Shown: positions 42,501 to 49,331 of the stretch, one piece after another
How positions within the stretch are numbered: the stretch's first letter is position 1
How the letters are laid out: every line of letters begins with the position of its first letter
Source: Salpingoeca rosetta
Lineage: Eukaryota > Protista > Choanoflagellata
Reading direction: 5' to 3'
Assembly: GCA_033442325.1 (NCBI GenBank)
Contig: JAWQFM010000008.1
Location: 927,194 to 991,193 of the forward strand
Length of the DNA: 64,000 nucleotides
Notes under the pieces: model-generated
The model's input: the letters and a program-made list of their open reading frames with translations, nothing else
Databases searched by the model: none
Told to the model about the DNA's origin: nothing
Position numbers and translations under genes: made by a program

Positions 42501-43535
42501 CACACACACATACACACATACCCGCGCGCATCCAAACCCACATACAAACACAAACACACAGACGGGCTTACGATGGTTTCTGGGGTCGTGACGATGACGA
42601 CCTCGAACATCCATTTGCCGGCGCACACGGCGACATCGGACCGAATGGAAGGAAACGCCCGCACGGCCTCGACACAGGTGAACTGGCGCGTGCGCGGCGT
42701 GTATGCGCCCAAGCTGAACACGGTGAATCCAACACCCGCTGGTCCAAGCCGCTCCTTTGTCTGCGACCCATGTGGGTGAGTGAACAAGATCGAGGCGAAA
42801 GAGAGATCGACACGTGTCAACAAACATGAGGATATCGACACATGCAAGCAACATGGCGAGGAAAAACGTGAGGGCAGCGGTCAACAACGACAAGAACTGC
42901 ACGAACACAAAAAGGCCCCCCTAACGGCTGTCGACACACCATTTCTTCGTGGGCTGGGGCCTCAGGCACTCGCGGGATCTTTGCCTGCACAATCCTCTCC
43001 GTCTACAGCACACGCATATGTGATGATGCAAATTGGCGCCAACAACCATGGTCATAAGCGTACGCGTTGCGTGCGTGTGCGTACGTGTGTGTATGTGTAT
43101 GTGTGCGCGCGTGTGTGTGTGCGTGTGTGCGTGCGTTCACACGAGCACTCAAACACAAAGATGCACACGCATACACAGCAGGCACAGGCTGTGTTGTCGA
43201 GAAGGGACAGGCGTGCGGGCCCAAGTGACAACACACCACGCACATACACACATGCACGCTCATCACCGACCGTGGCGAAGCTTGGCGTCGACGTGTCATA
43301 CGGCGACACATCGCCGAAGCAATACTCCTGAATCAAAGGGAAGCAAACCAACAACACACCGCAGGAAACACAGCATCGACGCACGGTATGCTATTAGACA
43401 CTTGCTGCTTTTGAGACAGACAGGGGTGGCTTCCCTGGTCGACACAAAGCACAAGCACCCAACAGCAGCAACAACAGCAACCAACCAACAACAAACGTGT
43501 CATCATCGACTCTCACCAGCACAGCACTGTCCATG
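36939..43535 (-). CDS. RNF123: E3 ubiquitin ligase RNF123/KPC1 (N-terminal SPRY, C-terminal RING)
   Basis: SPRY segments are [70 protein letters not shown] and [12 protein letters not shown]. The C-terminus [18 protein letters not shown]|[27 protein letters not shown] matches the RNF123 RING ([11 protein letters not shown]...CGH.SC..CI..HL.N.KDCFFCK). The 5' start is approximate. Confidence 0.9.
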
Positions 43536-43951
43536 TTGTTGGGGAAGAGAAAAACCGCCACAGCAGCGCGGCGTCCTGTCTTTCCTCGCAACAGCACAAA
43601 ATGCATTTTCAAAACGTGGTTGCTTCCTTTCCTTTCTTTTTTTGTGTGTGGCTGACTCACAACTCACGCCACCGACCAATCAACGCTATCTTCTCCATCA
43701 CCGTCCCTCAACACAATAACAACCAAAGTTGCTGTTGGTGTTGATTCTTTGGTGTTCAGATCAGCATCGACCACCACCTGTGCTGCTGGTTTGTTGCACG
43801 CACATGCACACAGAGCGTCAGCCCAACCACCGTGTCACTGTGTCACACCACACCACACGATCAGCACCAGAACCGAAACCACAACAACACCCACACCAAC
43901 AACAATATCAACAAACAACAACCACAACCGGACATCCGATCACAGCTCATC

Positions 43952-46511
43952 ATGAAGGGGCGAGGGAGTGGCCAAGGCAGTGGCCACCCCGTGGTCGTCG
44001 CCGTTTTGTTGGCCCTCGCGTGCCTTCTCGTGTCCGCACGTCCCACACTGGCTCGCAAGGACCGAGACTTCAAGCCACACTCCCAAACCAGCCTTCCGTA
44101 CGTCGTTGCCTCTTGTGTGTGTGTGTGTGTCATGTGTGTGTGTGCGTCATGTGTGTGCGTGTGTGTGTCATGTGTGTGTGCGCGCGTGTGTGTGCCATGT
44201 GTGTGTGTCATGTGTGTGTGTGTGTTCGGGTACCGTGTACATTGCGCACTTCAGGTTTCGATGACATCTCACACAAACACACAAACACACACGCCCTCGC
44301 ACTCACTCTTCTCAACCCGCACGCAACCACAAACCCACGCATGTGCACGCAACGCACACAGGCTCAATGCTGGGCCGGGGGTGACGATGGACGAGCTGAA
44401 CAACGTGCGCCAGAGGCTGGACGTGCTGCCCGACCACCTGTTCGCCATGACCCACAACAACCTCATGCTGCGGTTTCAGCTGGGCGGCGTCGTGTGCGGC
44501 CGAATTCCAGACACCGCGTTTTGCCTGCAGAGCCTGCCCACCACGCGTTGGATTGGCAGCATCGTCACACACTACCCACTTGGCGTGGGTAACCTCACTG
44601 TCACGGACGTCTCCGCCTCTGGGTTCCGCCTCACGTCCACGTACACCCTGGACGTGTCGCGACCAAACGAGACCATCAGCACGGGCGCCATATCCATGTT
44701 CAGCCAGTTTCTCCCGCCAACACAGAAGGACATTATGACGCGCGGCGAAATCGAGTTCACCTGCGCGCGAAACATCACGGTGCCGACATTCCCCCACCTG
44801 AGCCTGGGCATCGACCGTATCATGGAGGATGGCATGGTCGTGCACCGCTACCGCCTCGTGGCCGCCCACCACTGCGTCTGCTCAACACCAGACCCATCCT
44901 CCCCCTCATCATCGTCAGCAAACGGCGACGGTGCCTCCACCTCATCCTCCTCTGCAACCACACCTCTGCCGCTGGCGTCGTCCACAACCGCCGGTTCACC
45001 ATCCTCCTCCTCGTCAACATCAGAGCATTTGCTTGCACACCCGTCTTGCGAGTACTTCAACACCACGTACAGCTACGCCTCTGCGATGGACGAGTGGGAG
45101 CGCAAGTCGCCAGACCACAGCTACCAGGCGCACAAGTGCTTCACCCGCGTCTCGGGCCGCCTCTCAATCTGGGCCGGCATCGGCACGCTCCTGATTGCGC
45201 TCATCTGGGGGATGGACGTCTGGCTCGGCGTGCCCCTCATCGCGTGCGAGTCGTGCACGGGCGCAGACAGACATGTGGACGAAACGTCCACCTGCCGCGG
45301 CCGCTGTCTGACGTCATCGGCACCGCGGCACCGCCTCCACCCCATCGGCACTGCACGCTACATCTGGACCTTTGGCTTCCTGGACGTGCTCACACCGCCC
45401 GTAAACATGCTTGAGCGGCGTGACTCCGCGTGGGCAACCGCTGCCGGGTTTGGCATGATGAGCCTGACCATCCCCTTCGTCTTCAACGGCGCGCTGGAGC
45501 TGACACAGATCCTTGAGCTGCTGCTCTTCTTCACGCCCATCCTCCTGTGCCGGCATGCGCGCGTGCCGTCCATCGGCTTGTGCCTGGGCTGCTTCTTCTC
45601 CATCATCGCCCTGGGCGAGATTGGCACGCTCATGGGCTGTCTTGGCCGCACGTCCTCCTTTGTGAACCTCATGGCGACCCTCCCCTCCCTGCTCTGCGCC
45701 ATGCTTGTTGTCAGCTGGTACGTGCTTGAAACCAAGCGCCGCTTCGTGGCCCTGTGGCTCTGGTTCAACGACCGTGGGCCCAGGCCCGTCTCCTGGCGCG
45801 AGCGCGCCCTGCTTGCCCTTGACCGCAGCGGGTATGTTGCCAGCCTGCTTGCCGACAAGATCAAGGTCAGCCTTGGCGAGTCGCTCACCTGGAGCGCGTT
45901 CCGCGCCACCATCCTCGGCCAGGACAACTACAGCGTGCCCACGCGGCTGCTGACGGCTGTGATCCTGGCCATCAGCTGCCTGGTGAGCCTGCTGCCGCTC
46001 ACCATGTCCTATGCGAGCCTGGCCGGCGCTGCGGTGGAGTGGATCATGTCCATGGGACACTGCTGCTCAGGTGTGCAGTGCGACCCGACACCGGGGTCCA
46101 GCCTGTGGATCAGAGACGCGTTTGACCTCGGTTACGGCATCCAAGTTGGGCGCGGGCACTCGTGCTCGCGCGACCAGATTGTTGTGCGCCGTGCCGTGAG
46201 CTACGGCATGACTGTCAGCACCTCTGTCACCGCTGTGGCTGTCACCTTCTCGCTGCTGCATGTGCTTGTTGTCTACCGCAAGCGCATGTTTCTTCTCTTC
46301 CGTGGACGCCCCGATTTCATCACAAAGCATGTCCCCATGGACAAGAGTATCGGCAGCACCCTCAAGTTTGGCGGCACGCAGGTGTGTATCTGTGCGCGTC
46401 TGTGTGTTTGTTTGTGTGTGTGTGTGTGTGCGTCTGTGTGTGTCCGTGTCTGTCTGTCTGTCTGTTCGTGCATGTGTCTGTGTGTGTGTGTGTGTGTGTG
46501 TGCGTGCGTGT

Positions 46512-46550
<39 letters not shown>

Positions 46551-46667
46551 TGAGAGTTAGTAACTGCATACGTACTTGTGCTTTCCTTTGTTCTTCTTCC
46601 TCCATCTCCATCCTTTCTCACCCCTCACCCAACATACTCACACACACACACACACACACTCACTCAC

Positions 46668-46743
<76 letters not shown>

Positions 46744-48624
46744 TCACACTCACACCACATGTGGCAGGTTGCGAGTGCCATTGGCGGATGGGTGCTGGGC
46801 ACATGTGTGCTGACGCTGCTGATTGGCTTCATTGCCATCTCCACCGTGCTGCCGTTCATGAACATCTACGGCGACTGGTTCTGGCCCTGGTGGTTCCAGT
46901 TTGTCATCTACAACCACGAGACCGGCGCCCTCGGGTTCCCCGTCATCCTGCTCATCAACTACTGGCTGCTGCTGTTCTGCGTGCGGTTTGTGTTTGAGAT
47001 CTCCAAGAAGGACCACGGCCTGCAGCGGCGCGGGTTCTTCCACCTGATGGACCTGATCCAGTTTATCTTCTACATCCTCAACGCGCTGCTTGGCCTCATC
47101 AAGCGTGCCGTCACCTCCATGGTGCTGCAGGCCGTGTTTGTCAGCCGCATGGACAAGAGCCTCATGCCCCGCAAGTACGAGCTCACGGACAAGTCGTACG
47201 TCGCCTACTTGGGGTTCATGCAGCTGGACTACTACTACTCCCACCCAGTGCTGCTCACCGCCGTCTACTTCTTCCTCGCGGGCACCCCGCGCGACCGTCG
47301 CACAGCACGTCGGCTCGGCATCCGCCTGTGGCGCTCCCGTAACCGCGGCGACCGCGTATCGCTCTCGCGTGTCACGTCCAGCCCGCGCAGCCCTGACAGC
47401 GGCGGCGGCGGTATTGAGCTCACCAGCAGCATGGAGTCGCCTGGCTTGCAGCTCGGCGGAAGCGCCTCGTATCAAGACAGCATCAACGGCAACGGCGCGT
47501 GTGTGCCCGAGTACACGTGGCGGGTGCGCAACCGGTTCTGGCTGGCCATCACGCTGCACAACAACCCGCAGCTGAAGGAACAGCGCAGCCACTACCTGCG
47601 GGCCAAGGCCGAGGAGCAACGGCTGAAGGAGCTGAGGGAGGCCGCCAAGGTCATGCGCAGCCGCCGCATGTCGCTGCACGAGATGGCACATCGCGTCACG
47701 CGCGCGTCCGCACACGTCGCACACACGCTCGCGGGCCTGCGCTACCACGCCATGGACAACCAGCCCGCAAGCACGGCGGAGAGCGGGCGTGACTCGCCAA
47801 AGGCCCTGCTTGCCGACAGCGCTGATGGCACCAACGGCACGAATGGCACAAAGGCGGTGGCGAGCGGCAACGGCTACCATGGCGGTGGTATTGGGTTTGG
47901 GCGGAGTGGGAAGAACAAGTACCTGCGCCACTATCGCCAGGACAGCACAGATGATCACGATGACGATGATGATGACGATGAAGGCGAAAACGCCTACGAT
48001 TACGGCGATGGTGGTGGTGGTGGTGGTGGTGATGGCGCGAAGAGCAGCAGCGACGATGTGCATGTGCAGCACCGCCAATATGATGTGGCAGACAGCGATG
48101 GCGAGGCGCTCGACTACACGTGCCCGCCCAACACGCTGCTTGACCTGAGCCAGGTGCACCTGCAGGAGGTGCAGCGCAAGCAGCAGCGGGCCATGGAGGA
48201 CGAGGACGGCCTGTACGAGGAGCTCGCAGCCTTCAGCGCCAACCTGGCCGTCGACTCTCGCAGTGGCAGTCGTGGTGGTGCTGATAGTGGTGATAGTGAT
48301 GACGACGCAGGTGGTGATGTGGCGCGTGCACGGCGGGGTGTTGGGTCGTTTTCGCCAACAGCGGGAGTAACTACAGCGACGTCGGCGCCGTTATCAGCAG
48401 CAACGAGCTGGAACCCAACACGACGGGCTGGCGGTGTTGGTGATATAGACGGTGGTGGTGGTGGTGGTGGTGGTGATGAGAGGGGGCGTGCGCAGTCGGC
48501 GCGGTTGCGTTCACGGGTGGTGCGGGATGATGGTCGGAATGGCGGTGGGAACGGTGCTGGTGAGAGGCAGCGCTCCATCACGTTTGCAGACCGCCTCAGC
48601 CAGTCCACAAGCTCCCAGCTTTGA
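43952..48624 (+). CDS. STRA6-family (RBP-receptor/STRA6-like) polytopic membrane protein with signal peptide and extra N-terminal extracellular domain, 3 exons
   Basis: Exons are 43952-44097, 44362-46381 and 46768-48624. Several TM segments are followed by [76 protein letters not shown] and [22 protein letters not shown]. These correspond to the STRA6 hallmarks (MDLSLLP...DPGY.TY..FL......HP and R.RW.LAYTL..NP.L...R). PVNML near the first TMs is also STRA6-like. Confidence 0.85.
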
Positions 48625-49331
48625 AAGAAAGGTGCGTCTGTGTGTGTGTGTGTGTGTGGGTGTGGGTGTGGGTGTGGGTGCGTGGGGGGTGTGGGAGTGG
48701 GTGTCTGTCTGTCTGTCTGTCTACCTGTCTATGTCTGTGTTGTGTGCACGTGGACAGCCGGTTGCCTACATCCCTCGCTCGCGCCACCTTTTCCGTGCTG
48801 TTTCTTCCCCGCGTCACCTCACCAAGTGCACTGTTGCACGCCATTGCTGTTGCTTGTAGAGCCCCCCACCCCACGCACGACACCTCACGATACCGGTTTT
48901 GTTTGCCGTGTGTAGCAGAGACGGAATCAGTTGTGGATGCTTGCGTTGATTTGATGTATCTAATCGAAGTTGATGGTTGACCTTTGTTTGTGTGTAACAA
49001 CTTCTTGTTTGAATAATTTCTGTTCCCCCCCCCCCAACCTGCCCTTTCTTCGCCCGCTTGCGTTTGCGTGGCTGTGTTTCGTGCGCGTGTGTGTATGGTT
49101 GTTGAGTAAGCGCACAGACGCTGCTCTCTAATAAAGCAAGCAGCTACAGCAGCAACTACAGCAGCAGCTACATGCACGACAGAACAAGAAAGGTCTATCC
49201 TAGTGGAAACAAGAGGAGGAAGGGAAGAGGAGAGGAAGCCTGCAGCACAGAAGACTGCAGTCAAGGGCAAGAGTGTCAACACATTCGCACACACACACAC
49301 ACAAACACATTAACGCGTGCGTGAGCGGCCG

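Follow-up and report, generated by a model that had tools for sequence, protein, structure and literature searches.

A STRA6-family membrane protein with a predicted MRH-fold ectodomain in the choanoflagellate Salpingoeca rosetta

What might a protein of the STRA6 type do in a unicellular organism, where there is no RBP4 system for it to dock? This question is raised by a locus of Salpingoeca rosetta found at positions 43952-48624 of a 64,000-nucleotide stretch of contig JAWQFM010000008.1 (this whole stretch is referred to as the window, and all features of the gene described below lie on its plus strand). The original prediction, made from the letters and their open reading frames (ORFs), had proposed a multi-pass membrane protein of the STRA6 family, and had argued that in a free-living cell without a serum retinol-binding protein (RBP) circuit its ligand should be a different one, possibly a bacterial lipid. 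STRA6 is usually treated as part of vertebrate vitamin A transport, and a recent paper traces it back, within vertebrates, to zebrafish (PMC12714816). The gene in the window is a concrete case of another picture, in which the STRA6 core and the calmodulin-helix motif were already present in unicellular relatives of animals, and diversified there into several paralogue groups. The explanation that we favor, with a probability of about 0.7 for the whole of it, is that the locus encodes a membrane protein of 1340 residues in which a predicted MRH-fold ectodomain precedes a STRA6 core, that this protein is orthologous to neither STRA6 nor STRA6L, and that its mechanism would resemble the one known from its homologs.

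An expressed gene of the STRA6 family

The locus is a real, expressed gene with three coding exons. Two long ORFs cover it (43832-46813 and 46576-48624), the second of which contains both motifs quoted in the original prediction. The coding sequence starts with an ATG at 43952 and ends with a TGA at 48622-48624, exactly the bounds that had been proposed, and no in-frame ATG is found between the preceding in-frame stop codon (43829-43831) and position 43952. In-silico splicing of the exons (43952-44097, 44362-46381, and 46768-48624) yields 4023 nt and 1340 amino acid codons with a single, terminal stop. Exon 1 contributes the start codon and an N-terminus resembling a signal peptide (hydrophobic at residues ∼14-30), exon 2 the ectodomain, a linker, and the transmembrane (TM) helices TM1-TM7 of the core, and exon 3 TM8-TM9, an intramembrane helix, the conserved C-terminal motifs, the tail, and the stop codon. 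Both introns are of the GT..AG type. Intron 1 (44098-44361, 264 nt, GTACGT...CAG) has a (TG)n half on the 5′ side and a CA-rich one on the 3′ side. It preserves the reading frame and lacks stop codons; the raw ORF therefore runs through it, and ORF-based gene calling would wrongly do the same. Intron 2 (46382-46767, 386 nt, GTGTGT...CAG) passes from (TG)n to (GGCT)n and then to (CA)n/(CT)n.

Both joints are present in transcript contigs from two independent studies (44097>44362 and 46377>46764, the latter being the splice 46381/46768 given an ambiguity of 4 nt), and one contig covers 43651-44097, 44362-46377, and 46764-48441, otherwise without differences. Stranded raw RNA-seq reads from two runs, recruited on 43500-49000, cover the exons ∼5- to 35-fold on one strand only, and the introns ∼0- to 2-fold. 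The boundary between exons 2 and 3 (...KFGGTQ|VASA...) is continuous in homologous transcripts of three other choanoflagellates. Two other descriptions of the locus were considered and rejected: a pseudogene or read-through ORF, since the RNA shows that the in-frame, stop-free intron 1 is spliced out, and the presence of further introns inside the coding exons, since the single contig spanning 43651-48441 is broken by the two introns only.

The STRA6-family core (45038-47271, with intron 2 within; residues ∼275-890) comprises nine hydrophobic helices, an intramembrane/juxtamembrane helix, and a conserved block of 25 residues leading to an HPV triplet. Membership in the family is secure, and the match is far beyond chance. 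In the Pfam search that the original prediction had suggested as a check, both large exons exceed the cut-off of 25 bits for RBP_receptor (PF14752), exon 2 with 31 bits (E 1.4e-7, profile positions 50-262 of 605) and exon 3 with 64 bits (E 1.4e-17, positions 430-605 of 605). The sole sequence match in the PDB is zebrafish STRA6 (5sy1; phmmer, E 1.9e-6), which is also matched by a profile of the choanoflagellate cores (E 2e-9, plus a separate small match on its residues 599-629). By its ESM Atlas features, the core falls among 19 RBP_receptor clusters at 0.9 or above. The hydropathy of the protein indicates helices at residues ∼317-343, 421-445, 452-475, 481-505, 572-600, 665-688, 722-755, 775-800, and 811-847, in agreement with those expected for a STRA6 core, in addition to the signal-peptide-like segment, and the blocks conserved family-wide are recognizable (YRK...RG..F, GGTQ, and SRMD...YE..D.SY.AY.GF...HPV).

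For the fold of the core, an AlphaFold 2 model was built of the Microstomoeca roanoka orthologue (P0002, residues 1-1010) from an alignment of 116 sequences including the exons of the window; this orthologue is 59% identical to the window protein over the full length, and 84% over 510 core columns. The model (predicted local distance difference test, pLDDT, 79; predicted template modelling score 0.75) matches 5sy1_A with a Foldseek E-value of 3e-10, and with a VIA-align Z-score of 24.8 (root-mean-square deviation, rmsd, 4.0 Å over 493 of 582 residues), the unrelated helical structures that come next reaching a Z of 11 or less. The nine TM helices and the intramembrane helix are thus predicted to fold as in 5SY1. 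The earlier claim of a multi-TM protein of the STRA6 family in a choanoflagellate, and of a structural match to zebrafish STRA6, is borne out by these results, the latter for a monomer model of the orthologue.

The ectodomain, the extracellular loop, and the cytosolic side

The region preceding TM1 contains a domain with a predicted MRH (mannose-6-phosphate-receptor), or P-type-lectin, fold, a flattened beta-barrel (44363-44887, wholly in exon 2; residues ∼50-224), with three N-glycosylation sequons. It is followed by a mucin-like linker rich in Ser, Thr, and Pro (44882-45025, residues 223-270) in which 21 of the 48 residues are Ser, and which is predicted to be disordered. Here the window's own sequence was folded, together with 21 choanoflagellate N-termini, giving a model with a pLDDT of 78 overall and of ∼90 for residues 1-175. 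All 21 Foldseek matches of this model at an E-value of 1e-3 or better are mannose-6-phosphate receptors (MPRs), either CD-MPR or CI-MPR/IGF2R. VIA-align superimposes it on CD-MPR (3k41_A) with a Z of 11.1 (rmsd 3.0 Å, 136 of 145 residues), and its top 46 rows are all MPR or MRH structures (CI-MPR, IGF2R domain 11, ELAPOR1, OS-9, XTP3-B, GNPTG, Yos9, and glucosidase II beta), after which the Z drops to 2.7. The model of the M. roanoka orthologue independently matches the same fold, and a shape search of the ESM Atlas leads to the same families. ESM features give weak leads in the same direction (ATG27, CIMR, and Man-6-P_recep, 0.75-0.80), and a Pfam search with 19 choanoflagellate ectodomains has a single match, below the cut-off, of a S. 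urceolata paralogue to ATG27 (E 3e-4 to 4e-4).

In the alignment of these 19 ectodomains, Cys183, His218, Cys220, and Cys222 (the last three forming an H.CAC motif) are invariant, as is Cys278 in a longer alignment of choanoflagellate N-termini. With regard to the Gln/Arg/Glu/Tyr set that binds sugar in MRH lectins, a Gln following the second Cys (FCLQS) and a Tyr (HRYRL) are kept among the orthologues, but this conservation does not extend to the paralogues.

A second peculiarity of the extracellular side is a Cys-rich insert of ∼35 residues in the loop between TM6 and TM7 (46052-46165), with a stretch of 14 residues that leads to a final SC. It is nearly invariant among the orthologues, and a gap in every animal and Capsaspora row of the alignment shown. 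This loop is reported to be the site at which vertebrate STRA6 binds RBP. As the insert replaces it in the window protein, the docking of an RBP4-type carrier seems unlikely, and to this extent the reasoning of the original prediction from the missing serum RBP circuit stands.

On the cytosolic side, an amphipathic helix (47515-47610, residues ∼972-1003, including a motif of 22 residues) is a candidate calmodulin-binding site. In zebrafish STRA6, the main calmodulin-binding helix is BP2, formed by residues 600-626 (PMC12714816). A stretch of 25 residues of the window protein (974-998) aligns in HMMER with residues 605-629 of the zebrafish protein, 11 of the 25 being identical, and the motif W..L..TL.NNP.L...R is also found in aligned sequences of Capsaspora, Trichoplax, a sponge, and a mollusc. 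At the level of sequence, the BP2 motif is therefore conserved; when the 41-residue BP2-like region alone was searched against the PDB, neither STRA6 nor a BP2 peptide came up, the query being too short. The remaining ∼335 residues make up a low-complexity cytosolic tail rich in Gly, Asp, Ala, Ser, and Arg (47614-48621). It is not conserved among orthologues except for an acidic Tyr motif, EDGLYEEL, around Y1205 (48214-48225), which reads YEEL, YMEV, and YMEI in three orthologues. The consensus in four orthologues, [DE]-G-x-Y-[EM]-E-[LVI], is of the YxxPhi type with acidic residues before it, and could represent either a YxxPhi sorting signal or a phosphotyrosine site of the SH2 type.

Relatives and surroundings of the gene

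An exhaustive HMMER search with the profile of the choanoflagellate cores yielded 464 representatives at an E-value of 1e-3 or better, and names could be recovered for 30 of them. Among choanoflagellates they include Microstomoeca, Salpingoeca infusionum, S. urceolata, S. helianthica, Monosiga (two genes), Choanoeca flexa, Diaphanoeca, Didymoeca, and Codosiga. Further unicellular members are a protein of the filasterean Capsaspora and PTSG_04386, a divergent paralogue from S. rosetta itself, and the animal members come from a sponge, a placozoan, cnidarians, a hemichordate, a mollusc, and a fish ("STRA6-like"). UniRef already carries the name "Receptor for retinol uptake STRA6" on the Monosiga and Capsaspora proteins; the presence of the family in unicellular holozoans is thus found in public databases and is not new. 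According to surveys of the retinoid machinery, amphioxus has Stra6-like genes only and an annelid lacks stra6 (PMC3184775, PMC5821490), and our search of the open literature returned no paper linking STRA6 with choanoflagellates, Capsaspora, or premetazoan evolution.

A tree of 60 sequences (IQ-TREE, LG+C20; unrooted, with weak support for the deep branching order) places the 34 animal sequences in one clade (99% in the Shimodaira-Hasegawa-like approximate likelihood ratio test, SH-aLRT). The window protein stands apart from it, grouping with that of M. roanoka (99%) and then with those of S. infusionum, M. brevicollis (27531), and C. flexa (95%), in a group made up of choanoflagellates only. 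The phylogeny that the original prediction had called for thus argues against the gene being orthologous to either STRA6 or STRA6L. In this unrooted tree, at least four deep paralogue groups are exclusive to choanoflagellates, one of them containing the gene of the window. Extensions of 123-321 residues at the N-terminus are found in 16 of the 20 unicellular rows, and an extension of that size is found neither in Capsaspora nor in the 34 animal rows (median -49 residues, maximum +75). The fusion of an MRH domain to a STRA6 core hence appears to be specific to choanoflagellates among the sampled sequences. Neither the ectodomain and the Cys-rich insert nor the place of the gene in a paralogue group of choanoflagellates had been described in the original prediction.

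Word-index protein searches, performed with exon 2 and with an alignment of three sequences, retrieved five relatives of the choanoflagellate type only, with no animal protein and no match of 100% identity. Likewise, no product identical to that of the gene was found among the candidates of 445-1533 amino acids in a database of 5.8 billion protein clusters, though PTSG_04386 is present there, so that public annotation may have split, fused, or missed the gene at this locus. Two metagenomic gene fragments, P0001 (ENA contig of 2251 nt, 71% identical to exon 2) and P0004 (JGI contig of 2006 nt, 36%), end at ...GGTQV, the position of intron 2, and the site of this intron seems to be conserved in uncultured relatives.

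The longest transcript contig begins at 43651, which gives a 5′ untranslated region (UTR) at 43651-43951. The transcript of the neighboring gene on the opposite strand ends or is spliced at 43516-43595, and with its end at 43595 and the start of the STRA6-like transcript by 43651, the two would form a divergent gene pair separated by only ∼55 nt. In the 3′ UTR, a GT..AG intron of 228 nt (48632-48859) starts 7 nt past the stop codon, its joint being present in transcript contigs of two runs and visible as a gap in the raw RNA-seq coverage; RNA coverage at 48836-49000 is about double that over the coding region. Within the tail, a GAT/GAC repeat encodes a run of Asp residues (47950-47981) at which many RNA reads have loose ends or fold back on themselves. 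No true variant could be established there, and these reads probably stem from similar repeats at other sites in the genome.

Possible functions and comparison with known systems

From N- to C-terminus, the protein would consist of a signal peptide, an MRH-fold domain on the extracellular or lumenal side, a Ser-rich linker, the STRA6 core, and, on the cytosolic side, a BP2-like helix ahead of a long disordered tail. Homology with zebrafish STRA6 suggests that the core would form a dimer with a lateral cavity open to the bilayer. A small hydrophobic molecule could then move from a binding site on the extracellular or lumenal side to the membrane or back, and this passage might be controlled by Ca2+/calmodulin through the BP2 helix. 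In place of the surface by which vertebrate STRA6 docks RBP4, the protein would have its tethered MRH domain and the Cys-rich loop between TM6 and TM7.

Several points weigh against this explanation. The ectodomain of the window has no match in Pfam at E-values up to 1, and the profile of 19 ectodomains retrieved no MPR from the PDB, its hits being chance matches (pyridoxal kinase and ribosomal protein S0); because no sequence profile detects the domain, its assignment to the MRH fold is a structural one, with a predicted structure as its basis. The comparison of the core fold was made with a monomer model of the M. roanoka orthologue rather than with the spliced sequence of the window. Transport, binding of calmodulin, dimerization, and localization are predictions by analogy for this protein. 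Finally, since the TM6-TM7 loop is unlike that of animals, the mechanism may be substantially different on its extracellular side.

Among the more specific roles, the one that survives best, although we consider it doubtful, is an intracellular one, in which the protein would reside in the membrane of food vacuoles, endosomes, or lysosomes, with the MRH domain facing the lumen, the Tyr motif of the tail directing its sorting as in MPRs and ATG27, and the core exporting lipophilic products of digestion. The MPR/ATG27 fold predicted for the ectodomain points in this direction, as does the sub-threshold match of one paralogue to ATG27 (E 4e-4), and choanoflagellates feed by phagocytosis. YxxPhi motifs act as sorting signals, and the one in the tail is conserved in four orthologues; but it would suit a phosphotyrosine docking site equally well, and vertebrate STRA6 is a protein of the plasma membrane.

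It is somewhat less likely still that the handling of retinoids was the ancestral job of the family, with retinal, retinol, or a carotenoid product from digested prey being supplied as chromophore to the rhodopsin-phosphodiesterases (RhoPDEs) of choanoflagellates. Choanoeca flexa is devoid of a key enzyme of retinal biosynthesis and obtains the retinal for its RhoPDEs from bacterial prey; its response to light is lost without bacterial carotenoids and restored by 125-500 nM retinal (Brunet et al., bioRxiv 10.1101/661009). The same preprint also cites in vitro work on a RhoPDE of S. rosetta. A family member of C. flexa (P0010) belongs to the paralogue group of the window gene, and the only characterized members of the family, STRA6 and RBPR2, move retinol (PMC11050646). 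Yet, free retinal in the medium is effective without a carrier, and no receptor is thus required by that experiment; moreover, the loop reported to bind RBP is not conserved, and the existence of several paralogues suggests several ligands. Carried further, this scenario would make the link between STRA6 and retinoids older than animals, MRH-STRA6 proteins extracting prey-derived retinal or carotenoid products, and the tethered MRH domain holding the carrier-docking role later taken by soluble RBP4 in vertebrates, which we regard as equally speculative. Nevertheless, given the dependence of C. flexa on prey-derived retinal, the absence of RBP4 is not enough to dismiss a retinoid role, and the step made in the original prediction from a missing RBP circuit to a non-retinoid ligand was too quick.

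The role that had been put forward there, in which the protein would receive or import bacterial lipids (the sulfonolipid rosette-inducing factors, for example) or sterols at the cell surface and in this way control multicellular development, appears improbable. General points are in its favor, namely that the family handles a lipophilic ligand and that the gene is expressed in culture. Against it, nothing was found that ties the gene to rosette induction or sterols or that places the protein at the cell surface, the open literature searched contains no article on STRA6 in choanoflagellates, and the deep paralogue groups, at least four in number, extend across choanoflagellates whatever their colony habit. 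A protein that is mainly a signaling receptor, binding its ligand by the ectodomain and, by analogy with the reported STRA6-JAK2-STAT signaling, recruiting SH2 proteins after phosphorylation of the tail Tyr (YEEL), with transport as a secondary function, is the least probable of all. In its favor are the conservation of the motif as YEEL/YMEV/YMEI in an otherwise non-conserved tail and the existence of a phosphotyrosine signaling motif in the tail of vertebrate STRA6 (PMC12953553). Yet the two motifs differ in their placement, and that of the window protein occurs within its orthologue group only.

Returning to the MRH-STRA6 protein that we favor, its novelty with regard to the characterized family lies in the predicted MRH-fold ectodomain, the Cys-rich loop, the tail motif, and the picture of a family that had diversified before animals; the gene by itself does not reveal a new kind of system. 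It does show a choanoflagellate STRA6 core fused to a putative lectin-fold ectodomain that animals do not have, in a genetically tractable organism. This makes it possible to study how a STRA6-type protein functions in the absence of RBP4, and whether the handling of retinoids is ancestral.

Compared with known systems, the predicted fold of the ectodomain is common to CD-MPR and other MRH proteins (the CI-MPR repeats, OS-9, Yos9, XTP3-B, GNPTG, ELAPOR1, and ATG27), with which the window protein would also share a Cys-stabilized beta domain on the lumenal or extracellular side of a membrane anchor; in the window protein this domain is fused to a multi-pass, transporter-like core, a fusion that none of the listed structures of the MPR/MRH family has. 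Among unicellular relatives, MONBRDRAFT_27531 of Monosiga brevicollis is an orthologue, 37% identical over 999 residues, that has the ectodomain, the core, the BP2 helix, and the Tyr motif as well, whereas CAOG_08692 of Capsaspora owczarzaki has no ectodomain, its core starting at residue ∼33; the database entries of both carry no annotation of an MRH domain. By profile score, the closest animal sequences are the STRA6-like/RBPR2 proteins of a sponge, Trichoplax, a cnidarian, a hemichordate, a mollusc, and a fish (P0052, P0113, P0087, P0124, P0093, and P0059). They share with the window protein the motifs YRK...RG..FLP, Y.G.Q.A, SRLD...GYE..D.GY.AY.GF, and RNRW..A.TL.NNP.L, but form the separate clade of 34 sequences, without an N-terminal extension large enough for an MRH domain. 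Zebrafish STRA6 (5SY1) has in common with it the Pfam family, the whole fold of the membrane core as modelled for the orthologue, the SR(L/M)D...E..D..Y.Y...HPV block, and the BP2 motif. The identity between the two sequences is only ∼16%, and they do not appear to be orthologous. Beyond the zebrafish protein, that of S. rosetta would possess a signal peptide, an MRH-fold ectodomain, a mucin-like linker, a Cys-rich insert between TM6 and TM7, and a disordered tail of 335 residues.

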